Shown piece after piece: positions 1,644-46,890 of a DNA stretch of 64,000 nucleotides; the stretch's first letter is position 1; each line of letters starts with the position of its first letter. The stretch lies in sequence record PP793740.1; one strand, written 5' to 3'. The notes below the pieces were generated by a model. It was not told where the DNA came from, did not search any database, and saw nothing but the letters and a program-made list of their open reading frames with translations. Position numbers and translations under genes: made by a program.

Positions 1644-1747
1644 TGGGTATTCCCCTTATCACTATTGCATCTTAGTGATATAAATCTGAAATTAAATCCA
1701 GTGGAACTTTACATCCATGGTTAGTCGCCGCCATAACAGGAAATAAA

Positions 1748-1784: not shown

Positions 1785-1985
1785 TTACGACTTCAACCAT
1801 TCTTCTAATGGCGGTAAATACTTCTCATGCGCCCAGTTAATAATTGTTTCTACAACAGGACCCTGTAATTCAAGGTTACCTGAGATTTCATGTGGTTCAT
1901 CAATAGATAGAACCCATGTATGTGGAGCAATGCGTTCAGTTGCTTTGGTTAAATACACATCAGGCATTAACGTTAAATTAAGTTG
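1785..1985 (-). CDS. Non-virion RNA polymerase beta'-like subunit, exon 2 (phiKZ gp56.1)
   Basis: Begins CAA (Q) right after the intron terminal G, giving spliced NADFDGD|QLNLTLMP; 66 aa plus stop. Confidence 0.9.
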   Translation of the reverse strand, partial: QLNLTLMPDVYLTKATERIAPHTWVLSIDEPHEISGNLELQGPVVETIINWAHEKYLPPLEEWLKS

Positions 1986-3509
1986 CACTATCTTCATACA
2001 GCATCGTCAGCGACATGTCTAAAAATCATCTGGGTCATTTTCATATTTAAAAATGAACCCATTAATTGGTCGACGGTCTTTCTTTTTGAGTTTGCTAGTT
2101 ACTACTTTCTTTGATAATCCAAGATCGAGATATGCCTGCTTGGCTGATTTGTATTTCAAAATCTCGCCAGTTTCCACATTTTTCACAAGTGTGGTCTTAT
2201 TTTTAGCCTGACTATACTCAATGGATTCATCCCAGGTTGGCCATTCTGAACCAACCCGACGTACAATGTACCTATCCATAATGACTGGATAAATTGCATG
2301 TCCGCTAACTTTCAAAGAAATCGTACCTACACTAACCCCTATCGCCTCACTTGCTTTCTTTTGCGAGTCATATTTCCTGATTTCACCCGTAACGATATCC
2401 TTTATCTCAATACCGTCGTGCTCAAGAACAATTCCGTCCGTGTTAATTCCGCGATTTTTCAACATTCTCATGATCGCGGTATTCTTTGCTGATCCAATAT
2501 AACCGGTTTTGATTGCATTTCCATGCAACACATTTTCACTCTGGGTTACCCATTCTAGGTTATCGGGTACTGTATTGTCACGATCACCATCTATGTGGTT
2601 GACCACTTTCTCATTGATGGTGTTATCGTATTCAATAAATGTCAGTGCAGCTACACGGTGTAAATTCGTTCCTACATAGGTGCCATCATCTCGACGCAAT
2701 CCAAGATCTCTGTATCCAGTTGTCGCCAAACTTGTTAATTTAGCTGAACCTTCAAAAAGACTTATGACCTTGAGTTCATCATTGATTGCATAGCAGGTAA
2801 AACTAGGGATGAAATAATATCCTGGGAAGGTGGGAACCTCCAATCCTTCTTCCGGGAATTTCCAAATCAAGTTTCTAGGATGAATATTGTCTTCATCTCC
2901 ATCAGAAAACAATATTTCGCAGCGGCTAACAAACTCTAATGGCGCATGCCAGCCTTTAAAACACACTGCTATCAACTTAGTAACATGAATGGGTAGTCTA
3001 TGCCATGGTAATTCAAGAACGTAATGTCGGTTTATTGGATCTATCAATTTATCCAAAAATCGATCATAGACTAACCCATCCAGAGTCAGTCTATAACGCC
3101 CGAATGTACCGGGAATCACAATTTCTCTCGATTTGGGTATACGACTGTAAATAAACACATATCCTCCATTGGAAGACATGTCGCTGCTGTACCGTCCACT
3201 TAATATCTCCCGACATTAAGTAACTGCTCTAGCTTTCACTAGATGGTGAGACTATATCTTCTTCCCAGAGGGAAGCCTTCTATTTCGGACCACTTGGCCC
3301 TACTCTACTCCCTTGGCTGCTTTCGCAGTGGTTTCGATAGTCGTTGAACGTTCTTCCTATCTCGCCTCACGGCAATACGTAGAAGCTTCGCTGCTGATTG
3401 TCCAATCCTAACACTTTTCAAACCGTTACATTTTAGCTTTCGCTATCTGCTTTGGTAGTTAGGCTCTAAGGAGGTTCCAGCAATTAAGAAGGTTAGGAGA
3501 CCAATTAAA
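1986..3509 (-). mobile_element. Group I self-splicing intron with homing endonuclease
   Basis: P AATTGCTGGAAC (3474-3485), Q AATCAGCAGC (3390-3399), R GTTCAACGACTATCG (3335-3349), S AAGATATAGTCTC (3248-3260). P1 is exon GGAGAU paired with intron GUCUCC, with U.G at the splice site. Terminal G at 1986. Confidence 0.93.
2019..3179 (-). CDS. Intron-encoded HNH homing endonuclease (phiKZ gp56-like)
   Basis: HNH motif VVNHIDGDRDNTVPDNLEWVTQSENVLH; two C-terminal NUMOD1/IENR1-like repeats (KDIVTGEIRKYDSQKKASEAIG; KNVETGEILKYKSAKQAYLDLG). Confidence 0.9.
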   Translation of the reverse strand: MSSNGGYVFIYSRIPKSREIVIPGTFGRYRLTLDGLVYDRFLDKLIDPINRHYVLELPWHRLPIHVTKLIAVCFKGWHAPLEFVSRCEILFSDGDEDNIHPRNLIWKFPEEGLEVPTFPGYYFIPSFTCYAINDELKVISLFEGSAKLTSLATTGYRDLGLRRDDGTYVGTNLHRVAALTFIEYDNTINEKVVNHIDGDRDNTVPDNLEWVTQSENVLHGNAIKTGYIGSAKNTAIMRMLKNRGINTDGIVLEHDGIEIKDIVTGEIRKYDSQKKASEAIGVSVGTISLKVSGHAIYPVIMDRYIVRRVGSEWPTWDESIEYSQAKNKTTLVKNVETGEILKYKSAKQAYLDLGLSKKVVTSKLKKKDRRPINGFIFKYENDPDDF

Positions 3510-4772
3510 ATCTCCGTCGAAATCTGCGTTTGGAGCCTTAAGGCATAAAACTGACATGCTGATAGAATTATCATTAATGTCATCTTTTACTTTAGTAATA
3601 AAGAACTGCTGCGTAGATCCACGTTGAAGCGTTGGATTTCGGTGAAAAGTACAACCCATCCCTTTATAAGGGGCTGCTTCTGCAATTAGCTCTTTAAATA
3701 GATCTGCAATGATTTGGTTATATTGAAGTACATTCTCATATACAAATGAGAATGCTTCACGAGTTGTCATGTTAAACTTTGCTTTTAGTTTATTGGTTAG
3801 ATGATACTTTAATAATTGACAACCTACCCCCCAAGGGATATGTAGTTCATCATAATCATGCGGGTCACTAATAGAAGTGATTACTGCACGTGCCGTAGCG
3901 TTGAGACGAGCACCAAACATGTGACGCCGAGCAAGACCAGGCTTTTGAGCAATTCGTGATTTTGCGTAGATCTCGTAGAACTGGCCATATAGTCTTAGTC
4001 CTCGCATAGTCCTATTCTGAGCTTTAATTGGACTAAGTGGTACAGATGATGCATCAATACTAGCGAAGGTTAAGGTAGCATCAATTGCTGCTTCAATTGG
4101 TTTATCTAAGTAAGTACCAGATGTGGTTGATTCTGCTACGAAACAGAGTTTAGAAGGAACTGGTAAATATTTAGGGAATAACTTATCTTTATTCTGAGCA
4201 ACGAATTGAGCGAATTCGGATTTATTATTAGAGATAATATTTGCATCTAGTAGGAATTGGAAGATCTCATTGAAATTATCAATGAAGTGATTTAATCCTC
4301 TTTCAAATCCTCGATGCAGTAGCCTATCTACTTTCCTGCGTGTTTCCTTAGAACCAATAGATTCTACATCGTATCGATAAGAAGTATCAGTTAGATATGC
4401 TAAGAAATCGAATTCTTTAGTTACTAGATATCCGGTTAGCATAATGATTAAACGTGGGTTAATTAGGCTACGTACATGTTTTGGTGTACGAACCCACATT
4501 GATGGTTCGATAGGGCGGCTAGAAGTATTGACAACTGGAGTATTACAAATATCACAGATTACTCCGAGTTTATGTGCGTCTTCGATTGCTCGACAATCAC
4601 AGCTTACACTACTTTCAATTGCTTCTGAATCTTGGAAATGAGAATAGAAATGTCTATCAAATTCTTCTTTCTCATCTGAGTTACTCGTATTGTAATCATT
4701 GGCATAAATTCGTTTACCCGTAAATTGATCATGTACTTCATCATGATCAACAACTTTGGCATAAAGACCCAT
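3510..4772 (-). CDS. Non-virion RNA polymerase beta'-like subunit, exon 1 (phiKZ gp55)
   Basis: Zn-binding CDC...CDIC, RLNATARAVIT, RNPTL and catalytic NADFDGD at the exon end; spliced product about 487 aa. Confidence 0.93.
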
Positions 4773-4807
4773 ACCAAACTCCTATTTATCGATTAACAAA
4801 AAAAGGA

Positions 4808-4840
4808 GATATAAGCGGCCCCCGAAGGAGCCGCTATATC
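4808..4840 (-). terminator. Terminator of the chimallin transcript
   Basis: GATATA-AGCGGC stem, UUCG loop on minus strand, T-run follows. Confidence 0.75.
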
Positions 4841-4844
4841 AGTT

Positions 4845-5165
4845 TTTACAATGGACCACCAACGGAGCCTGGCTCGGTCCTAGTGTCGTCTACAAAGCTT
4901 AACCTCCGCTCTTCTCTGTAGCACTCTGGCACTAGGACCTTTTACCATCCATTGTAGTTTTTGATCACACGTCACCTTTTGAGTAACTCCTTTCGGTTAA
5001 GTGATCTATCATCCTCGTGTAGTGAGAGGTCGGCCTAGACTAAGTCCACTAGCCGATTACTTCACGGAACCTACTCCTAACCGTTGTCACCGAAGTGAAC
5101 CAGGTTCGCAGTATTAGAATTGGGATGTTACTTATTTAACATCCCTATCTACCGAGGTATTTCCT
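4845..5165 (-). ncRNA. Candidate structured RNA or 3' UTR downstream of chimallin
   Basis: Nested inverted repeats 4847-4855/4948-4956, 4876-4885/4930-4939, 4963-4968/5001-5006, 5030-5034/5052-5056, 5122-5130/5137-5145; no long ORF. Confidence 0.4.
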
Positions 5166-5166
5166 A

Positions 5167-7047
5167 TTAGTACCAGGTACCCGGTGCATTATAGGAAGGA
5201 GCGCCGTAGGTTTGACCCATGCTGCCAGCCATACCAACTTGTGCACTACCAGAAACAGCCATGTTACCCATACCGGTGTAACCAGCGAAGCGCTGTTGAC
5301 CGAAGTTGGTAATTAGGTTTTCCATGGTTACAGTTACACCAGCTGCTGCTGCTGCGGCATCCATTGCGGTGATGAATTTCGGGTTAAAGGTTAGACGACG
5401 AGCACGACCAGTATAGGTAACGTTACCTAGGTACATCTTGTCGAAGCCTTTACTGTTATTCATACGACGCACAATGTGGTCATTACCTACTTGAGTAGCA
5501 TACCAGGTCTTCCACTCTTGATCGTTACCTTCAGACATGTTCATGGCACCTAGAACGTCAAGATCACGACGGTCACTTAGTTCGCCATGCTCATCAGTGT
5601 AGTGACCGAGGTCTACTTCATGATGGTTGTCAAAGATGATCGGACCAGCTTCAGCTAGGTTATAGAACTGACGGAAATCAGTGCCATATAGGTTAGTTAG
5701 AGCTTGGAAGATCAGGCTAACTGCACGAGCTTGGTTTACGCCACCAGCTGCATCTAGGACTACTTGCTCAAGAGCAGAGTTGTCACCCATCGGATCGATA
5801 TCGATCTGGAATGCAGGGTTCTGGTTAACCATCTTGTTCATTAGCATTACGAAGTTGCTGTCGTCTGCCATGAATGCTTCGGTGCGAGTTTCAATCGCTT
5901 TACCTAGCTCTGAGTAATAACCAAGTGCACCAATATCACGCATCTTGCTGGTAGCGATCTTCGGCATTAGGGTACGAGCCCATGCCTGGGATGCAGTTGC
6001 ACGATACGCATTACCAAGTGCGAACAGCCACATTTCTAGAGTCCATGCTTGGATCCAGGAAGCCTTACGAACGTCAGTGATAACGATGTAAGGAGTGAAC
6101 TGCGGAGGTAGAACTGCACCAGGTAGAGTTACGCCGAACATACCTTGTTGCTGGCCAGTGGTCGGAGTCCAATGTAGGTCTACGAATAGACTAACTTGGT
6201 TTAGCTGGCTATCGGTATCATAGAACTCGTTCTCAGGTACGTTGGTTTTCTTACCACGGCTAGTGGAGATAACCAGGTCAGAACGAATCGGATTACCGCA
6301 GCTATCTTTAACCGGAATACCATTGTAGTCTAGGTTGCAGGTAAGCTGTTCGTTTTCTGCTTTGATGTGGGTCGCAATAGAGAACGGAGTCTCATTGTTA
6401 CGACGTGCGATAGCATCTTCACAGATATTAACAGATTCAACTAGTAGGTTCTTAACAGCTAGTTCATCTTTGAAGTCGAAGTCAGCATACACTGCACGGG
6501 GACCGGCAGATAGTACTTCTAGACCAGGGATGTTGTAACGGTTCCGTAGGAATTCGCCGATCTTGCTCCAGTATTGAGCAGTGAATACATCACGCGGTAG
6601 TACCTTCTCTTCAATGATGTCGTCAGTTAGACCATTGTTGATCTTGTGGGTACGGGGACGGATGCGAGTACCAGGTAGGTTATCGAGTACTAGAGTACGA
6701 ACGAATGCCTTCATGGAACCATTGATATCTTTAGCTAGTTTAACAATTAGTAGACCAGCCATACCAACTTGTTGCGCATCGCGATCGAAACGATGGATAT
6801 CGAAATCATCAGGTAGGTCCTGATGGCGGATTGCTTCTTCTTTTACTTTAGTGAATACTTGTAGGGCATCTGCTGAACGAGCATCAGAACCATCTAGCCG
6901 CCCAGAGCGACGCATTAGATGGTTAATGCCAGTAGTAGACCCAGGCGCGCCAGTAGGACGTTGAGCTTGACGCTGTGCAGTGGGTTGCGGAGCAGGAGCA
7001 GTAGCTTGAGTTTGAACGGTGCCGATTTCGTTTTCGTTAACAGCCAT
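5167..7047 (-). CDS. chmA: Chimallin, major phage-nucleus shell protein (phiKZ gp54)
   Basis: 626 aa with flexible Q/A/P-rich N-terminus and G/M-rich C-terminal tail; lies immediately upstream of the nvRNAP gp55 gene; early promoter; strongly biased codon usage; resembles recalled gp54. Confidence 0.9.
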
Positions 7048-7119
7048 TTTAAATACCTTTACGATTATGGTTTCTTGATCAAGAAGAACCTAAGTACTTA
7101 GTATACTAGATTCAATTTA

Positions 7120-7140
7120 GTAATATAAATCTCAAATTTT
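7120..7140 (-). promoter_or_regulatory. Early promoter (TATATTAC) of chimallin
   Basis: TTTGAGATTTATATTAC on minus strand, about 70 nt upstream of the ATG; matches the phiKZ early consensus. Confidence 0.8.
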
Positions 7141-7358: not shown

Positions 7359-7724
7359 TCATTTACTTTGCATATATTTACGAACTGTTCCAAAAAGAGA
7401 ATGGTACAGTTTGTATAGTTTACTAACTGGATCAACTTTATTATTATCAGTTGTGTCAAATTTAGCAACAAATGGTGAATGTGCTGAAGCAGATGTTTCA
7501 TTTACTTTAACTACACTACCAAATCGATGCGCGACTAATAGCTTAACTAATTCCTCATGGAGTTTAGTAGCAGTTGCTAATGGATTGGGGTCATTAGGAT
7601 CTATCTTAACTCTACGCTCTACATTGAAAAAGTTAACTACAATTTCTTTGCTAGTCATGTATACGGTAAGATCTTTGTTATTACCTAAATATAGTGGCGG
7701 GTCTTCAACATTATTTTTAGCCAT
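7359..7724 (-). CDS. Hypothetical protein (gp53 position)
   Basis: 121-aa ORF with RBS AGGA. Confidence 0.7.
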   Translation of the reverse strand: MAKNNVEDPPLYLGNNKDLTVYMTSKEIVVNFFNVERRVKIDPNDPNPLATATKLHEELVKLLVAHRFGSVVKVNETSASAHSPFVAKFDTTDNNKVDPVSKLYKLYHSLFGTVRKYMQSK

Positions 7725-8940: not shown

Positions 8941-9666
8941 TTAGAAATTACCTTTCTTCATTTTAGAAAGTAATTTTCTACGTTCAGCTCGGTTAATTCC
9001 TGGGATAGCTGGCAATAGCATTTTATTACTAAACTTACCTGGTCGACGGTCATGATTTAGTAATTGATCAACTACAGCTTGGTCGCTGCTTTTAACTCCA
9101 TTATCCATTTCATCTAATGGATCCATAATAGTTTTAGCAGTTAGCCTTAGATGCGTAACCAGTTCATCGAATGAACTATCAGTATTAATAAGTTGTTTAT
9201 CAACACCTTCTTTAAGAGCTTGTTTAATAGTTACGTCTTTTACTAGAATATTATCACATTCCCAAAGAGTTGTATGATGGGTATTTAGCATTAATTCAAG
9301 TGAGACATTATTGTAATCATTGTCAGCACTTGAGTGCCAATTGAATTCATCGATATAGTCATTTAGACTATTTAACTTTGGTGGTTCGTTATTAGAGGTA
9401 ATTAAACCAATTGGTTGAACATCATCTAGTGAACTTTTATCACTAGTAATTGCAGTTGTTTCAGTAGTAACATCAGCTTCTTTTAATTCATTAGAATAAG
9501 TTACATATACCAATTCCTCAGTACCATCATCCAAAAGAACATAGGCTGTTGCTTTGGTGGAATCATCAGGGGCTAATCCATGGATCCTAATACGATTATC
9601 ATTTACTAATTTACTATAATCATTCCAAGTGATTACACGAACTTCATTAGTCTTTTCCATTATCAT
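8941..9666 (-). CDS. Hypothetical protein (gp51 position)
   Basis: 241-aa ORF ending in the NRAERRK basic motif common in phage proteins. Confidence 0.7.
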   Translation of the reverse strand: MIMEKTNEVRVITWNDYSKLVNDNRIRIHGLAPDDSTKATAYVLLDDGTEELVYVTYSNELKEADVTTETTAITSDKSSLDDVQPIGLITSNNEPPKLNSLNDYIDEFNWHSSADNDYNNVSLELMLNTHHTTLWECDNILVKDVTIKQALKEGVDKQLINTDSSFDELVTHLRLTAKTIMDPLDEMDNGVKSSDQAVVDQLLNHDRRPGKFSNKMLLPAIPGINRAERRKLLSKMKKGNF

Positions 9667-9921: not shown

Positions 9922-12117
9922 TTAATAGAAGTCGGAGATGAGTCGATCGTTATTTTTATCAATAAGGAAAATACCTAGGGACTCTAAGGTTAGATAGAAT
10001 ACACCCATAGTATTTCCAATGATAGTTCTAACGTCAGCAACACGCGTAATAACTTCTGGAATACGACCAGTTTCTACTACTGTACTCGGGATATGGAAAT
10101 CACCAATACTGGTTTTATTTTCTTCAGTAACCCATGCTTGAATACGAGCAGCTAATTTCTTATCTTCGATACCATCAATCCATTCTTTGATCGCAGTTTT
10201 ATTATTAAGAGTAACTGAGATCTTTACATGTGAATAAGGTGGATCACCAGCGTCACCAAATGATGGAGCAAATACAGTCTTCCACACTAATCCCTTTTTA
10301 TGGGTTGAGTTATCTTCAGATTTATAAGACTCAGGTCGTTTAGTTTGACCACTTGTCAGATACTCAGCTTTACCACTTCTAACAGACTCAATAATTTCTC
10401 TTTCGATATCACCAACTTCTTTTAGAATTGAAGCCAAGTCGATTTTCTCTTCAGTCTTTACAGTTTTAATGATATCTTCCATGAGTGTTTTAGCACGACT
10501 ATTAATCTTCTTAGGTACTTTACTATCCCTTAGTCCTACACCCTTGATCTCCATTCGTGACTCATTAAACATTACCCCTTCTTGGGCATCCTGTGATGCA
10601 AAGTAATGTTTAGAACGAGTAGTTAAGGCCAGTACTGCGAAATAATATTCGTTCTTCATTGCAAATAGACGAAGCTTATCTTTAGATACACCCATATTAG
10701 CGGATTGAATCGCCAAGATATGCATAACTACTTCAGACACTAGAAACACTAGTGCGAATACTAGTCGCTTAGCTTCATTGCTAAAAGTTACTTTACCAAA
10801 GAATTCCTCAACCCACCATTGTAATGTAAACATAGTGGAGTCAGTATCTGAAATAACAGCAGCTCGTCTATACACAGTTGGAAAAGCATGAATGCTTGAT
10901 GGTACACATTTAGTCAAGAAGAAAGCTTCAATCAATAGACGATATTCATTAAGAGTTTCAGCGATATTTCGACCAGTGGCATAAACTTGGTTTAATGTAT
11001 CTGGATCTGACTCTTTTAGTTTAGCTTTAGATCGACCTTTAACAGTATCAAAGCAAATAAAGCTAGCCAATAGATCCATATCACCATCATAAGTTGAATA
11101 TTCTTCTTCAGTGATGATTTGTTCTTTTGTTCCAACCTGGCTTAATTTAATTAGAAAGCTCTTGATTAATTCTTTATTGTATTTATATAAGTGATATAGA
11201 TCACCTACGTACATAACTGCTGCTCGTTCGACTGGTGTCATCCCAGTAGCTAGTTTTAAAATCTGCGCCGTGTAGTACTTATTTTGCCAATAGTGTTTAG
11301 TTGAATAAAGAACCATATCAACTACTTCTTCTGGCGTTGGGCAATGTAGATTAAAATTAGTTACTGCTTTTTGAATTAACTCCATATCAGCTACATTAAT
11401 AGTGTTTACTAAATTAGCTTTTGTGATTTCTGGAGTATAATAATGCCTATTACCCATAATGAATTTTTCATTATTTGAGTTAGCATAAGAGGTACCAGTT
11501 CTACAGGTAGATGTTAAACTAGAGTGTGTGGACTTATAATAAAGAATAGTGGCAGCAGATACAGTACCGCCTGAATATGAGTTATTGTTAATTTTGAAGT
11601 TTTCTTGCTCACCTTTACGTACTTGTGCAAGTTCTGTTTTAATTTGTGAATTCTCTTTATCGCCGGCCTGTAGGAAAGCAGCTGCTTCACGTTCAGCCTG
11701 CATCTGTTCACCTTTAACACGCTTACGGTTTTTCACACCTTCGGCAATATAGATGGAGTGCGTCGACTGTCTAACAGACTCTGGTAAATATGCGGTCATT
11801 GATGGAGATAATAATAGATTCTGTTTCTTAACACGGTTAAGAAAAGCCATAAATGAAACCGTCTTTAATTCCCTATCACCAAACTTATTTTTATCTAGAA
11901 TAGTTGCTAATGGATTACGAAGTGCATATTCGCCATTTTGACGTAATTGTTCTTTAACAAATTCTTTACATTCTTCTAAACTAATATTTAATTCATCTTT
12001 TGTCATTAATTGAAGATATTTGGCATTATCATCAAGACATGCATTAATGATATCAATATCACGATGGTAATCATTGACATCTTTTAAAAACGGATTTGGT
12101 TGGGCAAATGCGGTCAT
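9922..12117 (-). CDS. Family B DNA polymerase, catalytic part of a split enzyme (phiKZ gp50)
   Basis: Motif B-like KINNNSYSG, motif C SDTDS, KNEY..KHY and EIKGVG; no exonuclease or motif A recognisable. Confidence 0.85.
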   Translation of the reverse strand: MTAFAQPNPFLKDVNDYHRDIDIINACLDDNAKYLQLMTKDELNISLEECKEFVKEQLRQNGEYALRNPLATILDKNKFGDRELKTVSFMAFLNRVKKQNLLLSPSMTAYLPESVRQSTHSIYIAEGVKNRKRVKGEQMQAEREAAAFLQAGDKENSQIKTELAQVRKGEQENFKINNNSYSGGTVSAATILYYKSTHSSLTSTCRTGTSYANSNNEKFIMGNRHYYTPEITKANLVNTINVADMELIQKAVTNFNLHCPTPEEVVDMVLYSTKHYWQNKYYTAQILKLATGMTPVERAAVMYVGDLYHLYKYNKELIKSFLIKLSQVGTKEQIITEEEYSTYDGDMDLLASFICFDTVKGRSKAKLKESDPDTLNQVYATGRNIAETLNEYRLLIEAFFLTKCVPSSIHAFPTVYRRAAVISDTDSTMFTLQWWVEEFFGKVTFSNEAKRLVFALVFLVSEVVMHILAIQSANMGVSKDKLRLFAMKNEYYFAVLALTTRSKHYFASQDAQEGVMFNESRMEIKGVGLRDSKVPKKINSRAKTLMEDIIKTVKTEEKIDLASILKEVGDIEREIIESVRSGKAEYLTSGQTKRPESYKSEDNSTHKKGLVWKTVFAPSFGDAGDPPYSHVKISVTLNNKTAIKEWIDGIEDKKLAARIQAWVTEENKTSIGDFHIPSTVVETGRIPEVITRVADVRTIIGNTMGVFYLTLESLGIFLIDKNNDRLISDFY

Positions 12118-12768: not shown

Positions 12769-13152
12769 TTACTCATCTAGTAATACTACTACACCAAACA
12801 GACCTTTCGTATCCATTGGTACTGTAATGAGTACATGTCCATCTGGATACTTTTCTTTAAAGCTATTGATAAAGTCGGTGCAATATTCAATAACATATCC
12901 TTTAGTAGAATAATTCTCTAACTCAATATCTTCATCAGGATCATCAAATGAGTCATGTCCATACATCAGCATATGGATGTATATGTCATTATTAAGCGTA
13001 TCCATATAACTTAACTTACGTGATTCTTCAAATAAATCAAGTGGTGTTGGACAATCTGGATATATCATTCGTTTTGTATATTCACGAAGCAAATGTTGCG
13101 AATATACTTCTGACTCTTTAGATTTAAATACGATAAATACTCGTTTTTCCAT
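12769..13152 (-). CDS. Hypothetical protein, probable paralogue array member
   Basis: 127-aa ORF, RBS AGGAA. Confidence 0.7.
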   Translation of the reverse strand: MEKRVFIVFKSKESEVYSQHLLREYTKRMIYPDCPTPLDLFEESRKLSYMDTLNNDIYIHMLMYGHDSFDDPDEDIELENYSTKGYVIEYCTDFINSFKEKYPDGHVLITVPMDTKGLFGVVVLLDE

Positions 13153-13224: not shown

Positions 13225-13761
13225 TTAATCCACATCATTGTAACAGTCCATACCAAAGTCTTCACCTTCTAGAATATAACCCTGATTATGTTGATCAACT
13301 GCTATTGATTGGATTCTTTCTACACCATATCCATTTTGATAGAGATGTGCTATTTCAGATTGTAGTTTGCTAGCCAATGTTTTACACACGGTCGCAAACC
13401 ACATATTAAGAATACTCAATGCATATTTATCTTGCATAATCACAGGTGCTGCCGATGGAAAGTATTCTTGTAAATAATAGTCAACCCCTATAATTGGTTG
13501 AGTAGGCTGTTGCGCTAGAAATTCAATATATGAATTAATTGCCTGATACCATAATTGTTCTATAGACTGGTGTTCAGTATATGGGTAAGGGGTATTGTAA
13601 GATTTATTGACAACTACATCAGCCATTTTATTAACAATGGGCCAGATATCACTGATGTTAATAACTACGAAACTCGTCATTCCTTGTTGACCTGGAGTTA
13701 TGTTATTAGCATCATTTATCCGCTGCATTTCTTGTTGTCTATAAAGAAGTGGATGCATCAT
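13225..13761 (-). CDS. Hypothetical protein, probable paralogue array member
   Basis: 178-aa ORF, ATGA coupling with the upstream gene. Confidence 0.75.
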   Translation of the reverse strand: MMHPLLYRQQEMQRINDANNITPGQQGMTSFVVINISDIWPIVNKMADVVVNKSYNTPYPYTEHQSIEQLWYQAINSYIEFLAQQPTQPIIGVDYYLQEYFPSAAPVIMQDKYALSILNMWFATVCKTLASKLQSEIAHLYQNGYGVERIQSIAVDQHNQGYILEGEDFGMDCYNDVD

Positions 13762-18068: not shown

Positions 18069-18102
18069 GATTATTCCTTTAACATGGATTATTATCATGT
18101 TT

Positions 18103-18120
18103 GTAATATAGCCTTTAAAT
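18103..18120 (-). promoter_or_regulatory. Early promoter
   Basis: ATTTAAAGGCTATATTAC matches TTTAAA-N3-TATATTAC. Confidence 0.75.
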
Positions 18121-19780: not shown

Positions 19781-20764
19781 TTAATCGAATACAAGACCAC
19801 TACTAGTTGCTTGGTCATCCACATCTAGAGTAGACTGACGCTTACGCATATTAGCTTTGGCTCGATTCATCATTTCACGACGTTCTTCTAATCGTTTACG
19901 AATATCTTCAACAGATAGACTAGTGATCACAAAATGCATTTGATCGAAATCATATTTCTCGGGATCAGCATAACCAGTGGTACGAGTTAAAACAGTGTTA
20001 ATGGATACTTCGCGATCAGGATCAGTGTATAGTGAAGCAATAGAAATTGGATCCAGAATAGCCTGAGCTTTTTGACGATCGAAACACACGTGTAATTGGA
20101 CAGTCTGTACAGGTACATCATGGTGCTTATGGAAGTGTGCCCAGTTAGTGATATCCATTAGATCAAGACTTTGGTGTTCTTGATTAAATAGAATTACTAG
20201 TGCATTTAGTACTTCAAGAATGTTTTGGTTCACCATTGATTGCGGTATACCTTCAACATTCTCATGATAGTTAATAATCATCGGAACTTTACTAACAGAG
20301 GAAACCCCTTCAAAAGTCTTAAGGCTACCACTGCTATTACGAAGACTAATATCACTGTCATAAGATCCAATGACCACACTTACAACTACTTCACCTTGTT
20401 GTTGTAGATGACTAACAAGAGAAGGACCAATGGTTGAACCAGAAGCACCACCCATTGAGTATACCACGATGTTAGTATCCCCTGCTGGGAAATGATGGGC
20501 AATGGCAGGAATATGTGCAGAGATTAGTTCTGCGGCTGCCTTACGATCTTTACCCATACCGATAGCACGTTTACGTGCAGTCTGGTCAGCTAGCTTAGTA
20601 TCCGCTTCAATAATGATCGTATTATCGTCAGTATTGTGTTTGTGTTTATTCTGTACACTGGTATCAATGTAGCAAACATCCTCATGATAACCATGGAATA
20701 GTTCACCAATACGGAAACCAGCACCACCACAAAAGTAAATTCGAGTTTTTACTTTAGACATCAT
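19781..20764 (-). CDS. phuZ: Phage tubulin PhuZ/TubZ (phiKZ gp39)
   Basis: CGGAG, DTS and tubulin signature SMGGASGSTIG; C-terminal tail ending SSGLVFD; 327 aa. Confidence 0.93.
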   Translation of the reverse strand: MMSKVKTRIYFCGGAGFRIGELFHGYHEDVCYIDTSVQNKHKHNTDDNTIIIEADTKLADQTARKRAIGMGKDRKAAAELISAHIPAIAHHFPAGDTNIVVYSMGGASGSTIGPSLVSHLQQQGEVVVSVVIGSYDSDISLRNSSGSLKTFEGVSSVSKVPMIINYHENVEGIPQSMVNQNILEVLNALVILFNQEHQSLDLMDITNWAHFHKHHDVPVQTVQLHVCFDRQKAQAILDPISIASLYTDPDREVSINTVLTRTTGYADPEKYDFDQMHFVITSLSVEDIRKRLEERREMMNRAKANMRKRQSTLDVDDQATSSGLVFD

Positions 20765-23248: not shown

Positions 23249-23288
23249 TATAGATACCTATTTGAATATTGTTTATTATTGCAAATTA

Positions 23289-23306
23289 GTAATATAGATC
23301 TTAAAC
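23289..23306 (-). promoter_or_regulatory. Early promoter of the gp36-dip unit
   Basis: TTTAAGATCTATATTAC on minus strand. Confidence 0.75.
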
Positions 23307-29048: not shown

Positions 29049-29101
29049 TTTAACCTCTCTAAAATTTACAATCTAGTTTTACTTATTGAATAAGCAAACA
29101 T

Positions 29102-29120
29102 GTAATATATATCTTAATTA
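29102..29120 (-). promoter_or_regulatory. Early promoter
   Basis: TAATTAAGATATATATTAC on minus strand. Confidence 0.7.
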
Positions 29121-40714: not shown

Positions 40715-40930
40715 TTAGGAAAAATTGAAAACGATTTCATTATCATGCCATTCCCAGGTGGCCACAATGATAGATTCATCACTCCGCTTCAACAGCTTAC
40801 CCTGACCAAGTACATGTTGGTCGATCCACGTCAGTGGTCGACCTTCTTGTTCGGCCAATGCATTTAATACGGCTCCATAAGTACCAGCCTTATAATTACC
40901 ATAAGGACCATTATACATTTTCATTGACAT
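40715..40930 (-). CDS. Small hypothetical protein
   Basis: 71 aa, RBS AAAGGA. Confidence 0.6.
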   Translation of the reverse strand: MSMKMYNGPYGNYKAGTYGAVLNALAEQEGRPLTWIDQHVLGQGKLLKRSDESIIVATWEWHDNEIVFNFS

Positions 40931-41007
40931 GAGTTAATTTCCTTTAACAGCTACAAATGGTCTTGTTACTGAACTCGAAGATTGAATGCATCTTGTCCAT
41001 GATGACC

Positions 41008-41343
41008 TCAGATATTTACCATGTTCATGAATTCGGCGTAGTTATAGCCAGTATTCATGTCGAGGTAGTCTTGTTCGACCATGTCGTCATTCAGGTACTT
41101 GACGTAAGCCTCGGCGTGAGCAGTGGCTACCGACTTGGTGAAGAAGTAACGAGCGTGTTGACGGTTCTGTTCGAATCGACGCAGATTAGTAGTGGCCTGA
41201 CCGCCGAAACCATTGACCTCCATTACCCCGTAAACAGTACGATCATCCAAAGTAGTGATCTGTGCAATCACTACACGAGAAGCATTTTCCGAATGGTCGA
41301 TGAACGTCATACTGTAAATCTCGATTTCTTTGAAGTCTTCCAT
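41008..41343 (-). CDS. Hypothetical protein
   Basis: 111 aa, RBS AGGA. Confidence 0.7.
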   Translation of the reverse strand: MEDFKEIEIYSMTFIDHSENASRVVIAQITTLDDRTVYGVMEVNGFGGQATTNLRRFEQNRQHARYFFTKSVATAHAEAYVKYLNDDMVEQDYLDMNTGYNYAEFMNMVNI

Positions 41344-41489
41344 TAGAATTTCCTGTTAAGAAATGAATAGACAATCCCTACCCGAAGGGAGGGGCCTTAT
41401 ATCGTTACTTGCTGTGAAGATTTTTCTCGCGTACAGCGTCTGTTAACTGACGTGGCGGGTTGAGTTGATCTGACAGGAGCTTCCGGAGG

Positions 41490-41747
41490 TTATCCAGACC
41501 GATTACTTTCTTCTTGGATATTGAGATTATTCTCTTTAAGTAATTTGTTGAGGTGGTATTTAACCTCCACCCATTCTAACCTACCCACGTCAATCCACTT
41601 CCGATAACCAGGAGCAGCAGGTTTGAGGACCTGGGTTTTCCAGCGCTGAAATCGGAAGTTGCCGACACGGATATCGGTGCTCTCAACAAAGCGAGGTGGG
41701 AGTATACCGAGGTCAGTCAGTATCCCTCGTAGCTTGTTAGAGTTCAT
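41490..41747 (-). CDS. Hypothetical protein
   Basis: 85 aa, coupled start. Confidence 0.6.
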   Translation of the reverse strand: MNSNKLRGILTDLGILPPRFVESTDIRVGNFRFQRWKTQVLKPAAPGYRKWIDVGRLEWVEVKYHLNKLLKENNLNIQEESNRSG

Positions 41748-41887
41748 CAGTAAGAACGCCTTGAGTTTCGAACACCGAAATGATCGATCATTCGTTGGAA
41801 CAACTTGCCAAACGAGAACTTTTCATACTCGCAGTCGATATGGAGGACATCAACGGTGTCCACCGGTGGATTATAACTACTGCTCAT
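41747..41887 (-). CDS. Small hypothetical protein
   Basis: Likely start MSSSYNPP after AAGGAG; 46 aa. Confidence 0.5.
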   Translation of the reverse strand: MSSSYNPPVDTVDVLHIDCEYEKFSFGKLFQRMIDHFGVRNSRRSY

Positions 41888-42215
41888 TGGCCATCTCCTT
41901 ACGTTTGTTTTTGGCCCAGTTCTTTTCATAATCGGAACGGATGAACTTAGCGCCGTTGGCATTTAGCCAGTAACGCTCCCCTTTGAAATAACGTTCTCGT
42001 TTAGCACGGGTCAAGCGAAGAGGATCGAACATATCTTGTTCCTGACACATGAATCGATTACGCAAGAAGCAGTTATCATTCAGGATTCGAACCGAGTACA
42101 GTTGACCAAGCCGGCAGTTAGCCAACTCAGCTTTCTCGGTACGTAGCCGAGTTTCGTATTTCTTTGCATCTTCGTGATGATTGCGAGGATGTTTCTTTCC
42201 AAGTTTCCTAGACAT
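41877..42215 (-). CDS. Basic hypothetical protein
   Basis: 112 aa, very K/R-rich. Confidence 0.65.
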   Translation of the reverse strand: MSRKLGKKHPRNHHEDAKKYETRLRTEKAELANCRLGQLYSVRILNDNCFLRNRFMCQEQDMFDPLRLTRAKRERYFKGERYWLNANGAKFIRSDYEKNWAKNKRKEMANEQ

Positions 42216-42226
42216 TATGTTTTTTC

Positions 42227-42532
42227 CTATTCTGTTGTTTTACGAAAAATCTTATCATGGAACGTCATTGCCAACACGACGCCTATCGAACCACCTAGAC
42301 CGCTGGATATGATAGCAGGAAGACCCACTATTACAAATAGTCCAATGGTGGTCAACTCAAGGGTACTGATACCCCATGAGGTGAAGAAAGCAGCTTTTTT
42401 GTACCCATGAAAGATGTTTCTTTGTTGAAAGGTTTTTACAAAGGCGTAGATGAATGATGTAGCTGTACTTAACAGTAGTAATATCCAGATAGGTAGATCA
42501 TGATTAATGTTAATCACTTCTCTTGTTCCCAC
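42227..42532 (-). CDS. Small multi-pass membrane protein
   Basis: Three to four hydrophobic segments and SGLGGSIGV glycine motif; start uncertain. Confidence 0.7.
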   Translation of the reverse strand: MGTREVININHDLPIWILLLLSTATSFIYAFVKTFQQRNIFHGYKKAAFFTSWGISTLELTTIGLFVIVGLPAIISSGLGGSIGVVLAMTFHDKIFRKTTE

Positions 42533-42582
42533 ACGGTGGGCTCACATTTAGTATGTTGGACATTATGATTATCTTCCAGTTG

Positions 42583-42870
42583 TTAGATATTGTGTTCCTT
42601 CGTATCGATGGCCGCCAGTGCCAAGATTTCGACATGATAAGGATGATCCACATTATGGCTGATACATGCCTCGCATTTGAAGATACGCCACATTCCATAC
42701 GAAGGCAGCTCGCGGTTTTTCACATAAACGTAGTCGTGCGCTGCCACGAGGTATTTTTGTTGAATCGAGAATTCACAAGTGATGTAACCTTTTTCACGGA
42801 TGAATTCTTGAGTCATCTGATCAAAAGTCTGTTTGAGTTCATCAGTAAGAGCGACTTGAGTTTCGAACAT
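42583..42870 (-). CDS. Hypothetical protein
   Basis: 95 aa, RBS AAAGGA. Confidence 0.7.
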   Translation of the reverse strand: MFETQVALTDELKQTFDQMTQEFIREKGYITCEFSIQQKYLVAAHDYVYVKNRELPSYGMWRIFKCEACISHNVDHPYHVEILALAAIDTKEHNI

Positions 42871-42927
42871 TGAAATATTCCTTTTGATATATTAAATAGT
42901 TTTGATTATTTCGGAGTTATTGAATAT

Positions 42928-43146
42928 TTAGGTTACCATCTGCTCTATATAGACTCGGCTGATTTCATTTAAGTAAGCGAGTGCCAATAGAATACCAGCC
43001 CAAATAACAATTTTTCGAGTAGTCTGTTTTTCTATTACACCTGGGTGTGATTCACGAATACTACGGTGACAAAATACATAAAACAGACATAGACTCATTG
43101 TAACAAAGATAATGGTAAACCATCCCAGATAGATCATTTTCTTCAC
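42928..43146 (-). CDS. Small two-TM membrane protein
   Basis: 72 aa with two hydrophobic helices. Confidence 0.65.
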   Translation of the reverse strand: MKKMIYLGWFTIIFVTMSLCLFYVFCHRSIRESHPGVIEKQTTRKIVIWAGILLALAYLNEISRVYIEQMVT

Positions 43147-43166
43147 CTATTTTTTATAAATAGAGT

Positions 43167-43496
43167 TTATAGTTTAGTTAGGCGGATGATTTCTTCTAAA
43201 GCTGCATCAACTTGATAATACGGCCATGAATCAACACGAGGTTCGTTATCAAAGTATGTCCAAAGTTGAATACCTTGGAGTTTATTGTAGAATACATTGA
43301 TTCTGATTCCTTCATGGCCAACAAGACCTTCAATGTAAGCTGCACCATGCACATACGTAACATGTAGTGCGTACTCGCTATCTTCACCAATGTATTGTAT
43401 AGGTCTGGAGTAGATGAAGGAATAAGGATTAAATGGATCAGCCTGAGTGATATGTTCGAAGAATTCTTTCAAACTAGATTTTTTCATATTGGACAT
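43167..43496 (-). CDS. Hypothetical protein
   Basis: 109 aa, RBS GAGGA. Confidence 0.7.
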   Translation of the reverse strand: MSNMKKSSLKEFFEHITQADPFNPYSFIYSRPIQYIGEDSEYALHVTYVHGAAYIEGLVGHEGIRINVFYNKLQGIQLWTYFDNEPRVDSWPYYQVDAALEEIIRLTKL

Positions 43497-43558
43497 TATA
43501 TTTTCCTCATGATTTATTAAGTATACCTCCTAGAAGATAGACTTAATACTATTCGATG

Positions 43559-43951
43559 TTATTTTAAGACACCTGCCTTGTAACCTTTAACAACAGTTCT
43601 AGCTTCTAATGCACTGATTTCGCCAATGTGTTTACGCAGTGCTTTAATAGCGTTGATGGTAGGTTCATTATCCGCGATATGTCGCCAGTTTCCCTTACCC
43701 TTAATGAGTTCAACATCCTGGACATATAGACCATCTTTAACTAGATCCATTGTTTCTACCAACTTTTCGACTTCTTTAGTTAGATGCGTATGAAGACTGG
43801 CGAGGGACATGTCAGTCATTTGATGCACATCATAGAGAAAATCCCTATTATCAGAAGACGATAAAATTTCTTTGGTGAGTTTATTTACAGTGTCAATGTT
43901 TGCTGCAATTGAAACTAGCAGTGCGGCATATTTCTCTGCATTATAATTCAT
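43559..43951 (-). CDS. Hypothetical protein with L7/L12 C-terminal-like tail
   Basis: 130 aa; INAIKALRKHIGEISALEARTVV resembles the L7/L12 C-terminal signature (KI.AIK..R...G..L.EAK..V). Confidence 0.65.
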   Translation of the reverse strand: MNYNAEKYAALLVSIAANIDTVNKLTKEILSSSDNRDFLYDVHQMTDMSLASLHTHLTKEVEKLVETMDLVKDGLYVQDVELIKGKGNWRHIADNEPTINAIKALRKHIGEISALEARTVVKGYKAGVLK

Positions 43952-43979
43952 TAATACGTATTCCTATTTAAAATTGGAT

Positions 43980-44123
43980 TTAGTGTAATGCGGTAATACT
44001 GCGAATATCTAATTCATGTAAATCATATTTCTTTAGGAACTCATTCACCGCTTGCTGAATGGTGTACCCACTCGGAGATTCCCACTGAGTACCATTAAAA
44101 GCAATAATACGATAACCTACCAT
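43980..44123 (-). CDS. Small hypothetical protein (47 aa, not in ORF track)
   Basis: RBS AGAGGA; MVGYRIIAFNGTQWESPSGYTIQQAVNEFLKKYDLHELDIRSITALH. Confidence 0.6.
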   Translation of the reverse strand: MVGYRIIAFNGTQWESPSGYTIQQAVNEFLKKYDLHELDIRSITALH

Positions 44124-44147
44124 TTTTTATTCCTCTAATCACAAAAT

Positions 44148-44173
44148 AAATACCCTCCCGAAGGAGGGTATTT
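44148..44173 (-). terminator. Terminator
   Basis: AAATACCCTCC-UUCG-GGAGGGTATTT. Confidence 0.8.
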
Positions 44174-44179
44174 ATATCG

Positions 44180-44659
44180 TTACCAATTGATTACAGCGAC
44201 AAACTCAAATACCCGACACAATTCTTTATCACGATGGGCATGATGAAAAGATTTACCTTCAATACCGCAATACGGATAAAACAATTTTCGGTGTTCCGTG
44301 TCGCCGAACCAGAAGGTGGTGTTATTGGAATCAACCACACCATGGATAGCCACATCACGAATGTACTGAAATACATGAACTGCCTTATCAGTGATCACTC
44401 GCAGTTCTACACCGTGTTCCTTCATCATAGCCAGGATGTCTTCCTTGGTGTAATCTGCTTGTTCAGCATTGGTCATGATCTTGTGAGTCAGAGAACGCTT
44501 TTCCTTGTCACCGAAACAGATACAGACCAATTGCACCAACTGACCTTCTACCTTGAGACCACTGGTCGGTTTTAGTAGAACGAACTCATCATATTTGTAA
44601 TCATTGGTGACAATCAGTGCCGACTTATTGCGAGTGACAATACCTAAGCTATACGACAT
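44180..44659 (-). CDS. Hypothetical protein
   Basis: 159 aa, RBS AAGGA. Confidence 0.7.
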   Translation of the reverse strand: MSYSLGIVTRNKSALIVTNDYKYDEFVLLKPTSGLKVEGQLVQLVCICFGDKEKRSLTHKIMTNAEQADYTKEDILAMMKEHGVELRVITDKAVHVFQYIRDVAIHGVVDSNNTTFWFGDTEHRKLFYPYCGIEGKSFHHAHRDKELCRVFEFVAVINW

Positions 44660-44671
44660 AATTAATTTTCC

Positions 44672-45673
44672 TTATTTTAGAGTATGTTGGACCTTGTGGA
44701 TGTCTTCCAGGCTAGTACCCAGACCAGAAGCCATGTAGATATGTTCCTGGCCTACACGCTTGTGGAAACCAAGCAGAGCATCTACCGGATTTTCAATGGG
44801 GAAGTATTCGGTATTGTTGCAGTCCCAAGCAAACTCCCATTCTCCATCACGAATCTCTATTTTGTTAGCACTGAGGTAAGTGATATTGATGGTATTTACA
44901 GTGGCATTACCACCAATGAGGTAGTACGATCCTTCATTGCTACGAACATCGATCCTACCGCCATCGATAGTGTCCTGATAGTAGAAACCACGGTCGAAGA
45001 ATAACTTCAGCATCGAAGTGAAGTAGCTGTTCAATACAGCTTGAGCATCTTTCTCTTCGACCACCCATTTTCCATCAACGATGTTATTCAGGTAATTACG
45101 ATCATGATTGATCCCGACATTATCCACGATGTCAGCGTAGTTCTTATGGAACTTAGCAATCTCGTACAAACGTTCCAGAGTAGCAAAACGGAAAGGACTG
45201 GTGGGATGCAGAGCCAGAATGATCCGACCTACGCTCCACAAACCGGTCCCGTTGACCTCGTAACTTTCTTCGAGGTAACCTTTGATACCACAGTTAACTT
45301 CAAGTTCATCTGCTGGGAAACCGGTGCGGAGCCGCCTACGGATAGCCAATAGTACCGATTCGGATTCTTCCGGATCGAACAGATCTATGCCGAAAGTAAT
45401 CCAGCTACCACGTACTTTGTGCTGGTATGCCAGGCGTACAGTATCACCGAATGGAGAAATGAACCAGCGTTCGTCTTCCGATACGACCAAATGGCAACCA
45501 CATTGCCACAGGGTACTTAGAGGATCATTAGAGGCGAGAATGCGCTTGGTGTCGTTCATATCCGACGAAGTAGCATCTGGACTGCCATGTAGGTGTGTCA
45601 GAATAAACAGAAGCGATGATTCTGTAGTTTGAGCACTCAACATTGCGCGAGTGATGGTTGCATTGATGATCAT
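44672..45673 (-). CDS. Hypothetical protein
   Basis: 333 aa, RBS AAGGAAG. Confidence 0.75.
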   Translation of the reverse strand: MIINATITRAMLSAQTTESSLLFILTHLHGSPDATSSDMNDTKRILASNDPLSTLWQCGCHLVVSEDERWFISPFGDTVRLAYQHKVRGSWITFGIDLFDPEESESVLLAIRRRLRTGFPADELEVNCGIKGYLEESYEVNGTGLWSVGRIILALHPTSPFRFATLERLYEIAKFHKNYADIVDNVGINHDRNYLNNIVDGKWVVEEKDAQAVLNSYFTSMLKLFFDRGFYYQDTIDGGRIDVRSNEGSYYLIGGNATVNTINITYLSANKIEIRDGEWEFAWDCNNTEYFPIENPVDALLGFHKRVGQEHIYMASGLGTSLEDIHKVQHTLK

Positions 45674-45744
45674 GAGATATCTTCCTTTTTACAGTTTATG
45701 AATATATTGCTAAATAAAAAAATATTACGATGTAGAAAATAAAA

Positions 45745-45762
45745 GGGAGTCCGAAGACTCCC
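45745..45762 (-). terminator. Terminator
   Basis: GGGAGTC-UUCG-GACTCCC plus U-run on minus strand. Confidence 0.85.
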
Positions 45763-45777
45763 ATTATTGCGTGTAAT

Positions 45778-46890
45778 CTATTTGATGATAACCGCTTTAG
45801 AAAGAGTTTCCATACTTCCAATAACTAATTTGGATTTCTCTTCTTCAGGGTTCTCCATTGCTTCACGCAGGAGTTCACCAATAGTTTTGGGTTGAACATC
45901 ATCACTGATTTCACGCGAGCATGCCGAGTCGTCGTACATATCAAACACATTCAGATCATCATCATCCAGGGGCGTGCTGTCATTCCATGAATAGCTTGAT
46001 TCATCCGAGGTATCATCAGACTCACCATACTGTTCACTGAGGTCACGGTCCAGTTCAGCCTCATACATCTCGCTAATTGCTTTATCGTCTTCTTCTTGCG
46101 CCTTACGACGAGAAGTCTTGTAGAACGGAAGCAGGCGTTGCAGGACTTTATGGAACTTCTTCTTGCTGATCAACCAGCTAACAGAGTAGCGAGACAGCTT
46201 TACTTCAGCTGCTTTGATAGTCGGATCGGAGTACAGCGCCATGACTAGCTTGTCCAGTTTGTGCAGATGATCTTTAAACGAGTTTGCATAAGCAGGATGT
46301 TCCCGAAGAGTGAACATCACAAACGAACGCATGTCAGTGATATAGTACTGACTGTGATGTTTGTTGATTTCGATGTATACCGGATCTACTGCGCGGTTAT
46401 AATCGAATTCCTCTGCCCAGGTAAGGCTACGTACTTTAGTAGGACGAGGACCTTCTGCCCAACGAACAGTCGGATGTTTCTCACGGATGTTCCAACCATG
46501 ATTGCGATCATACTCGGTTGACTCTTCTTTGAACCAGGTGAAATTACCTTCACCGCGCGATACAATACCACGGCACCAACTGACGTTGATTGCCTTGTTA
46601 CGGCTTTCAGTAAGATCACAGGGCATGTCCAGAATAGCGACATAACTGTTATGACCATTGGCCACAACGCCGAGAACAGTAGCTTCGAATGTCTCGTAGC
46701 GCTGTCCAGGATACACACGTTCATTCTCATCCAGGTAACGGAGAGAACAGGACTCGAAGATTGCACGGGTACCAGCAGGGAAATGAGCGCGGCCGAAGGG
46801 GCTCTCGGCTTTACGTTCCTTGCGACGTTCGATAACCCATTCCAGTTTTTCTTTGGTCAGACGGGTGGTGGGTTCGCGATATTGTTTCAT
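45778..46890 (-). CDS. Early protein with acidic disordered tail; candidate orthologue of ribosome-binding phiKZ014
   Basis: 370 aa from MKQYRE (RBS AAGGA); basic core plus D/E/S-rich C-terminus; identity from size and position only. Confidence 0.55.
   Translation of the reverse strand: MKQYREPTTRLTKEKLEWVIERRKERKAESPFGRAHFPAGTRAIFESCSLRYLDENERVYPGQRYETFEATVLGVVANGHNSYVAILDMPCDLTESRNKAINVSWCRGIVSRGEGNFTWFKEESTEYDRNHGWNIREKHPTVRWAEGPRPTKVRSLTWAEEFDYNRAVDPVYIEINKHHSQYYITDMRSFVMFTLREHPAYANSFKDHLHKLDKLVMALYSDPTIKAAEVKLSRYSVSWLISKKKFHKVLQRLLPFYKTSRRKAQEEDDKAISEMYEAELDRDLSEQYGESDDTSDESSYSWNDSTPLDDDDLNVFDMYDDSACSREISDDVQPKTIGELLREAMENPEEEKSKLVIGSMETLSKAVIIK

Follow-up and report, generated by a model that had tools for sequence, protein, structure and literature searches.

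The stretch of DNA analysed here, 64,000 nucleotides (nt) from sequence record PP793740.1 and referred to as the window, contains on its minus strand a gene that almost certainly encodes ChmA (chimallin), the major protein of the phage-nucleus shell, in a Pseudomonas aeruginosa jumbo phage of the phiKZ species. The spacer between chmA and the next gene, gp55, holds an RNA of about 310 nt, and the balance of probability tips slightly towards this being a family of structured RNA not described before and confined to nucleus-forming jumbo phages of the Pseudomonas type. The chimallin identification is already known and adds nothing new; a preliminary description of the window, made from the sequence alone, had likewise called the system established rather than new, and phiKZ gp54 is indeed well studied. 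To a specialist, only the spacer RNA might be new. Coordinates are collected in Table 1.

The open reading frame (ORF) of chmA is intact, with an ATG start, 626 codons, one terminal stop and no internal stops. The preliminary description had given exactly this ORF, with the correction that it lies on the minus strand. The product scores 1120.5 bits (cut-off 27) with the Pfam family PF25677 (Chimallin_Phikzvirus), its residues 1-626 falling on model positions 1-627, and it matches PHROG 4795, "nuclear shell protein", at 1e-229. By sequence it also matches the solved chimallins of phiPA3 (PhuN, 8fne, 4e-164), 201phi2-1 (gp105, 7sqq, 8e-136) and Goslar (7sqt, 2e-17). The DNA of the gene, like that of the window as a whole, is 100% identical to that of Pseudomonas phage vB_PaM_W10-2 (PP793740.1), where it is labelled "hypothetical protein", and 97.7-99.5% identical to that of 46 other phiKZ-like phages, phiKZ included. 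Compared with phiKZ PHIKZ054 (98.1% nt identity; RefSeq label of NP_803620.1 "nuclear shell protein") there are 36 nt differences, of which 32 are at third codon positions, and 622 of the 626 residues are identical. The four substitutions (window to phiKZ: L258M, V312A, L426I and V430I) are conservative, and together with the third-position bias this indicates strong purifying selection. The length of 626 amino acids (aa), gp53 upstream, gp55 downstream, the promoter motif and the spacer are all as in phiKZ. The difference is that gp55 downstream of the window gene holds another intron/HNH element, inserted a few codons later. The Chimalliviridae gene set in the window includes a non-virion RNA polymerase (nvRNAP) beta' fragment, a divergent family-B DNA polymerase and PhuZ, and the genome has an identical counterpart among Phikzvirus records. 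No evidence contradicting the identification of chimallin, which the preliminary description had also made, was found in the data of this analysis. Most deposited phiKZ-like genomes, e.g. PP793740.1, OM718002.1 and AF399011.1, label the chimallin gene "hypothetical protein".

It is very improbable that an ORF with the chimallin fold is here a paralogue or an accessory shell component instead of the principal shell protein. Minor proteins associated with the shell, among them ChmB and ChmC, are described from chimalliviruses. Against this stand the mere four residues separating the product from phiKZ gp54, which experiments have defined as the principal shell protein, the single chimallin match per phage genome obtained with tblastn, and the full-length match to a chimallin-specific Pfam model.

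The AlphaFold2 model of ChmA, for which a 22-sequence alignment with relatives at 36-46% identity from viral contigs was the input, has a predicted template modelling score (pTM) of 0.76, with a confident core at residues 55-575 and disordered termini at 1-54 and 576-626. A Foldseek search with this fold against the PDB gave nine significant matches, all of them chimallin chains (E 3e-54 to 3e-32), with target-normalised TM (template modelling) scores of 0.77-0.95, where the preliminary description had named the lack of any chimallin fold match as what would speak against it. Next in order are GNAT-type toxins at E 0.18 (about 0.2), which fits the published GNAT-like C-terminal domain of chimallin (PMC9365700). 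The two-domain fold is shared with the solved chimallins of 201phi2-1 (gp105; 7sqq/7sqr/7sqs, 8igg), phiPA3 (PhuN/gp53; 8fne) and Goslar (7sqt-7sqv), to which sequence identity is 41-47% for the first two phages and about 20% for Goslar.

In the chimallin of 201phi2-1, Laughlin et al. assigned an N-terminal segment (NTS, residues 48-61) and two C-terminal segments (CTS1, 590-611; CTS2, 622-631), and deletion of NTS/CTS segments abolished self-assembly (PMC9365700). All three map by alignment to equivalent positions in the window ChmA, with conserved anchor residues. R47, G49, Q585, R586, F587, G589, V598 and A602 are invariant both in a 6-sequence alignment of genus-level relatives and in the 22-sequence alignment, and the C-terminal Y626 is invariant in the 6-sequence alignment. 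The motifs RSGR of the NTS and QRFxG of CTS1 are kept, as is the terminal tyrosine. The linkers are poorly conserved, as expected of flexible tethers, and in comparison with the solved chimallins so is CTS2 except for the tyrosine. The N- and C-terminal tails have predicted local distance difference test (pLDDT) values below 50; such low values are as expected for extended segments, but they count against the lattice-forming interpretation to the extent that docking of the segments is inferred from the alignment and not from the AlphaFold2 model. On the conservation of these residues the lattice tails NTS, CTS1 and CTS2 are retained.

Upstream of chmA lies a motif that places its promoter, as far as sequence can tell, in the early class of phiKZ, used by the virion RNA polymerase (vRNAP). 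The early promoters of phiKZ are extended AT-rich elements (PMC5312081; also the available part of PMC10914365), with the transcription start site (TSS) 6 nt downstream of the early consensus element (PMC5312081). The pattern TTNAR-N3-TATATTAC-N5-TG has seven exact copies in the window against 0.18 expected by chance, all on the minus, coding, strand upstream of ORFs and each preceded by an A-rich tract; a copy with one mismatch is found at 1668..1690. For chmA the motif is 66 nt upstream of the ATG, and transcription is predicted to start on the G of position 7113, which leaves a 5' untranslated region (UTR; 7112..7048) of 66 nt. Differential RNA sequencing of phiKZ has shown that PHIKZ054 has a primary TSS with an early motif and a secondary TSS with a middle motif (PMC8244752), so that chmA is expressed both early and middle. 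The word "early" in the preliminary description is therefore correct but incomplete. A simple scan for sigma-70 promoters gave promoter-like sites at chance level and was uninformative.

The gene was also said to be highly codon-biased, and its codon-usage distance is the largest among the 27 window ORFs of at least 250 aa. The GC content is 0.477, and at third codon positions (GC3) it is 0.417 against a median of 0.266 in 67 non-overlapping window ORFs; the effective number of codons (Nc) is 37.7. The leucine codon CTA makes up 78% in chmA and 26% in the other window genes; TTC, AAC, ATC and CGT are preferred, and TTA, CCA and ACA are not used. The phage tRNA-Leu of the window has the anticodon UAA. 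A block of ORFs at 40900..48300 resembles chmA in its raised GC3 (0.46-0.63, with 0.625 at 46986..47588) against the AT-rich background.

Since only four of 626 residues differ, the properties of phiKZ ChmA can be transferred to the window gene, and the window ChmA would with high confidence share the shell and nucleus properties of the phiKZ protein, as judged from this comparison. In phiKZ, antisense oligonucleotide knock-down of chmA followed by imaging left no ChmA synthesis, no nucleus and no plaques; chmA and the nvRNAP cistron downstream of it share a transcript (PMC12571901). A square-lattice shell around the phage DNA has been shown for 201phi2-1 and Goslar by cryo-electron tomography and cryo-electron microscopy (PMC9365700). 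On this background the injected virion RNA polymerase would start at the AT-rich early promoter, as shown for phiKZ and as the motif suggests here, and later the non-virion polymerase would use the middle promoter shown for phiKZ. The chmA mRNA, with its strongly optimised codons, would be translated at a very high level. The core of about 520 residues, comprising an N-terminal alpha/beta domain and the GNAT-like C-terminal domain, would form tetramers via the N-terminal segment 39-52, and the tetramers a flexible square lattice in which the C-terminal segments 585-606 and 617-626 dock on neighbouring protomers; these lattice steps have been shown for 201phi2-1, phiPA3 and Goslar, and the conserved segments and the fold suggest them here. 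The closed shell would then surround the replicating phage DNA and exclude DNA-targeting nucleases, while Imp2 and Imp4, encoded nearby, and import factors encoded elsewhere would let selected proteins in, and PhuZ filaments would centre the compartment. In the same scheme chmA would be the first cistron of a chmA-gp55 transcript in which a structured RNA ending in an intrinsic terminator separates the two cistrons.

The spacer between the two cistrons has a much better fold than shuffled controls do (z = -5.3). It comprises a 5' domain, a three-hairpin multibranch, and a 3' domain with two small hairpins that are invariant in stem and loop; the copies of Pseudomonas phages have a GAAA tetraloop in the 3' domain. 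The loops of the two hairpins, GGAG and CUCCGU, are complementary to each other, which suggests either a loop-loop contact or mimicry of a Shine-Dalgarno and anti-Shine-Dalgarno pair. Within the bicistronic early transcript, which carries the phage's most critical early gene, the RNA stands immediately ahead of the terminator and 25 nt ahead of the Shine-Dalgarno sequence of gp55. The terminator hairpin and its T-run are kept in the aligned spacers of Pseudomonas chimalliviruses including PhiPA3, Psa21 and 201phi2-1, and they are part of the consensus fold, in which the CUCCU behind the terminator is the pairing partner of the gp55 Shine-Dalgarno. A simple terminator scan of the spacer missed this terminator because the T-run begins 3 nt after the stem.

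In a blastn search the RNA was found in 57 records of P. aeruginosa jumbo phages, once per genome and always right after chmA, with no paralogous copies. Its copies in Phikzvirus and in Pawinskivirus (PS119XW, PA1C, HPP-Temi and others) share about 84% identity, and the flanking genes of the two genera have nt identities of 57% (chmA) and 66% (gp55), with third positions saturated at 41%. An alignment of nine spacer copies made with MAFFT and folded with RNAalifold gave 119 base pairs, in which 99.4% of the cells are paired (35-43% in slid controls) and ten pairs have double compensatory changes (0-1 in the controls). A covariance model of the 3' domain, with 163 positions, found in addition phiHQ and three metagenomic jumbo-phage contigs (L034, 4e-18; L025, 1e-13; L138, 1e-17). 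In these three contigs ChmA is only about 44% identical, and yet the order chmA-RNA-gp55, the helices and the invariant loops are kept in all three. The ten-sequence alignment of the 3' domain has double changes in 26 of 50 pairs, against 8.7+-2.2 in shuffles and 0-4 in slid controls, and 98.3% pairing; this alignment was fitted to the covariance model and so leans to structure, and the unfitted alignment agrees in direction.

The distribution of the element is uneven. In PhiPA3 the 5' domain is kept in diverged form (E 1e-7) and contains large insertions, and the match to the 3' domain is weak. In comparisons of spacers and with the covariance model the element was absent from Psa21, 201phi2-1, Noxifer and most metagenomic relatives, and many relatives with 80-nt spacers lack it. 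A strict two-motif pattern search of metagenome contigs gave no match, relaxing the pattern brought up 16 loci, one of them real, and a more diverse model of the RNA (R3) added no members. The spacer of phiHQ is chimeric, with a Psa21-like 5' part and a 3' domain of Pawinskivirus type. The chmA-gp55 gap of Psa21 (L007:4756-5190) holds a second, unrelated-looking type of structured spacer (fold z = -3.3), blocks of which recur by eye in the 5' half of the phiHQ spacer (L011:294-600), joined there to the phiKZ-type 3' domain. The gap between the two genes seems to serve as a place into which modular RNA elements can be fitted.

Several known explanations for a conserved stretch were tried and set aside. 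Searches with Rfam 15 gave no match to the spacer RNA with E<=1 over 2.9 kb and only noise on a 421-nt stretch (E 2.9-5.9, 13-15 bits), and at gathering thresholds over the whole window there was nothing at this RNA. A canonical group I intron is unlikely, since the same library detects the neighbouring group I intron. A T-box-like element, considered for a resemblance to UGGUGGUCC, is unsupported by Rfam. With regard to a bacterial origin, the invariant 17-mer had 90 matches in 596 Gb of genomes, where about 70 are expected by chance, and none passed the covariance model. Small ORFs are annotated within the spacer in some records, and were rejected as the cause of its conservation because the substitutions come as base-paired couples; several public phiKZ-like records annotate such tiny spurious ORFs inside the structured spacer.

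The similarity between Phikzvirus and Pawinskivirus could also be due only to recent recombination, as for the mobile intron 1.3 kb away, the spacer then holding no functional RNA. Sliding-window identity over 5.4 kb is in line with such transfer: conservation is confined to two islands, the spacer (88-94%) and the core of the group I intron (90-94%), within DNA of 50-68% identity. So are the chimeric phiHQ spacer, the PhiPA3 copy, which is much more diverged though its flanking genes are equally distant, and the identity of 94-97% among phiKZ-like phages, by which the spacer varies more than chmA. Transfer leaves the compensatory changes unexplained, however, as it does the maintenance of helices, invariant loops and position in the distant metagenomic copies, and transfer and function are compatible. 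Recombination without function is for these reasons considered improbable, and the structured-RNA reading is retained; the similarity across genera and the phiHQ chimera indicate that the RNA has in addition been exchanged by recombination between co-infecting phages.

The spacer RNA would tune the stability of the chmA mRNA and/or the read-through into gp55 and its translation. The most likely of three possible roles is regulation in cis, the RNA determining how far the terminator is read through and/or gp55 is translated and, in this way, the ratio of ChmA to polymerase. Second comes a 3'-UTR stabiliser of the abundant, terminated chmA mRNA, and least likely of the three is a processed, stable RNA with a function in trans, which could be a trans-acting or a ribosome- or protein-binding RNA. 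Its closest known counterparts are leader or attenuator RNAs that act in cis and structured stabilisers of the 3' UTR. What it has in common with them is a place in the UTR of a phage mRNA with high expression, a high degree of structure, and an intrinsic terminator at its end, shortly before the Shine-Dalgarno of the next gene. The nearest precedents in phiKZ, in the available text of PMC8545117 and PMC10914365, are the candidate non-coding RNAs 5'UTR_p40 and 3'UTR_PHIKZ298. Unlike these, which are 70-200 nt, the spacer RNA is about 310 nt, multi-domain, covarying across genera and without an Rfam family. It is not among the candidates named in the available parts of these two papers, on the Grad-seq and the transcriptome of phiKZ, which do not mention an RNA at the chmA-gp55 spacer; a full-text search of the literature with limited terms found no RNA described at this position.

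The gene downstream of the spacer, gp55, is predicted to be a split gene, interrupted by a group I intron with an HNH endonuclease right after the catalytic motif NADFDGD. The mechanical ORF of 437 aa at 3459..4772 consists of exon 1 and a tail of 17 aa read through into the intron. Its identity to phiKZ gp55 is 99% through residue 416, after which it diverges within NADFDGD, a universal beta' motif. With the uninterrupted homologues PhiPA3 gp054, 201phi2-1 gp107 and Noxifer gp051 as tblastn queries, residues 1-420 fall on 4772..3510 and residues 421-485 on 1985..1791. Phage group I introns with HNH endonucleases (RF00028), including the predicted gp56, gp72 and gp179 introns of phiKZ, share with the insert the ribozyme core and an ORF with HNH and NUMOD domains; a further likeness is that the gp55 intron sits in a polymerase gene that is essential, and there in the motif with the highest conservation. 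The gp56 element of phiKZ interrupts gp55 a few codons earlier, and both the insertion site and the endonuclease (only 26% identical to gp56) of the window intron differ from it. The available part of the work of Putzeys et al. with Oxford Nanopore (ONT) cappable-seq reports no spliced reads for the gp56 element (PMC10914365); the window intron is a different element. The gp55 of Bobae has two inserts without ORFs, and PS119XW (Pawinskivirus) has an ORF-less copy of the window intron at the identical site.

The preliminary description had placed chmA in a core locus. The nvRNAP subunit named there as one flank is the gp55 homologue (beta'-like, N-terminal), which starts 394 nt downstream of chmA, and this is the one constant neighbour across the 21 diverged chimallin loci examined. 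The DNA polymerase named as the other flank is upstream, but it is not the immediate neighbour: it follows 2.9 kb away after gp53, gp52 (a head protein on the opposite strand) and gp51. PhuZ, given as 13 kb away, is at 12.7 kb; its match to the Pfam Tubulin family is sub-threshold (30.8 bits against a cut-off of 33). The homologues of gp48 and gp47 correspond to Imp4 and Imp2, which in phiKZ are nuclear import factors for host TopA and for Nlp1, respectively (bioRxiv 10.1101/2024.03.27.586873). The gp51 homologue (8941..9666, minus) has 241 aa against 239 in phiKZ and only 13 of 240 identical positions in an ungapped comparison, which points to an indel near the start or another start codon.

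The chances are even that there is no functional core-locus module and that chmA, nvRNAP, DNA polymerase and PhuZ are a conserved early/middle synteny in which only the chmA-gp55 adjacency is meaningful. About 20 unrelated ORFs lie between PhuZ and chmA, the opposite-strand head-protein gene stands between chmA and the DNA polymerase, the core import factors Imp1 (gp69) and Imp6 (gp67) are outside the window with only the first ~200 nt of Imp3 (gp59) inside, and only the order chmA-then-gp55 is kept in the diverged loci. A module is favoured by the position of Imp2 and Imp4 between the DNA polymerase and PhuZ and by the co-transcription of gp53 with chmA in phiKZ (transcription unit TU038, in the available text of PMC10914365). 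"Core locus" is a fair but loose description, since unrelated genes are interspersed. Elsewhere in the window there are five phage tRNA genes at 60405..62104 on the plus strand (Leu-UAA, Pro-UGG, Met-CAU, Asp-GUC and Asn-GUU).

Table 1. Positions of the features of the chmA region and of related genes in the 64,000-nt window
Feature	Position	Strand	Evidence or remark
chmA: chimallin, 626 aa, orthologue of phiKZ gp54	5167..7047	minus	Pfam, PHROG, solved-structure matches, fold
Lattice tails of ChmA (predicted)	NTS residues 39-52, CTS1 585-606, CTS2 617-626		mapped by alignment from segments in PMC9365700
Early (vRNAP) promoter motif of chmA, TTGAGATTTATATTACTAAATTG	7135..7113	minus	pattern family and PMC8244752
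Six further exact copies of the early promoter	18096..18118, 23282..23304, 29095..29117, 49407..49429, 50881..50903, 51386..51408	minus	
chmA-gp55 spacer, 394 nt, GC-rich	5166..4773	minus	
Structured RNA (candidate), ~310 nt	4846..5158	minus	fold z-score, covariation, remote homologues
5' domain of spacer RNA, three-hairpin multibranch	5158..5013	minus	
3' domain of spacer RNA, invariant hairpins with loops GGAG and CUCCGU	5009..4846	minus	
Intrinsic terminator: hairpin GAUAUAGCGGCUCC-UUCG-GGGGCCGCUUAUAUC (4840..4808), UCC, seven U (4804..4798)	4798..4840	minus	read from sequence
gp55 Shine-Dalgarno, AGGAG	4783..4779	minus	
gp55 exon 1 (predicted), ends ...LKAPNADFDGD	3510..4772	minus	PHROG 2987; weak Pfam RNA_pol_Rpb1_2
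Group I intron with HNH endonuclease in gp55 (predicted), ~1.5 kb	1986..3509 (approximate)	minus	exon alignment
Group I ribozyme core	about 3531..3227	minus	Rfam RF00028, 74.8 bits against gathering score 50
HNH/NUMOD homing-endonuclease ORF, 386 aa	3179..2019	minus	Pfam HNH_3, NUMOD1, I-HmuI_NUMOD-like
gp55 exon 2 (predicted)	1791..1985	minus	tblastn, 85% identity to PhiPA3 gp054 residues 421-485
gp53 homologue, 121 aa, function not assigned	7359..7724	minus	121/122 positions identical to PHIKZ053
Divergent family-B DNA polymerase (gp50)	9922..12117	minus	Pfam PF20286, 1041 bits; identical to PHIKZ050
gp48 homologue, Imp4	12769..13152	minus	127/128 positions identical to PHIKZ048
gp47 homologue, Imp2	13225..13761	minus	178/179 positions identical to PHIKZ047
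PhuZ tubulin (gp39)	19781..20764	minus	Pfam TubZ_C_2 9e-36; PHROG 4733 "tubulin PhuZ" 6e-118; 322/328 identical to PHIKZ039

The W10-2 record and many sister records that label chmA as a hypothetical protein are under-annotated, and the predicted intron bears on the correct gene model of gp55. Different group I introns at NADFDGD in sister phages bear on intron-mediated competition between co-infecting jumbo phages. The spacer RNA, if functional, would be a handle on how high-copy ChmA is balanced against a low-copy polymerase subunit, and phage biology would gain through it one of its rare large structured RNAs.

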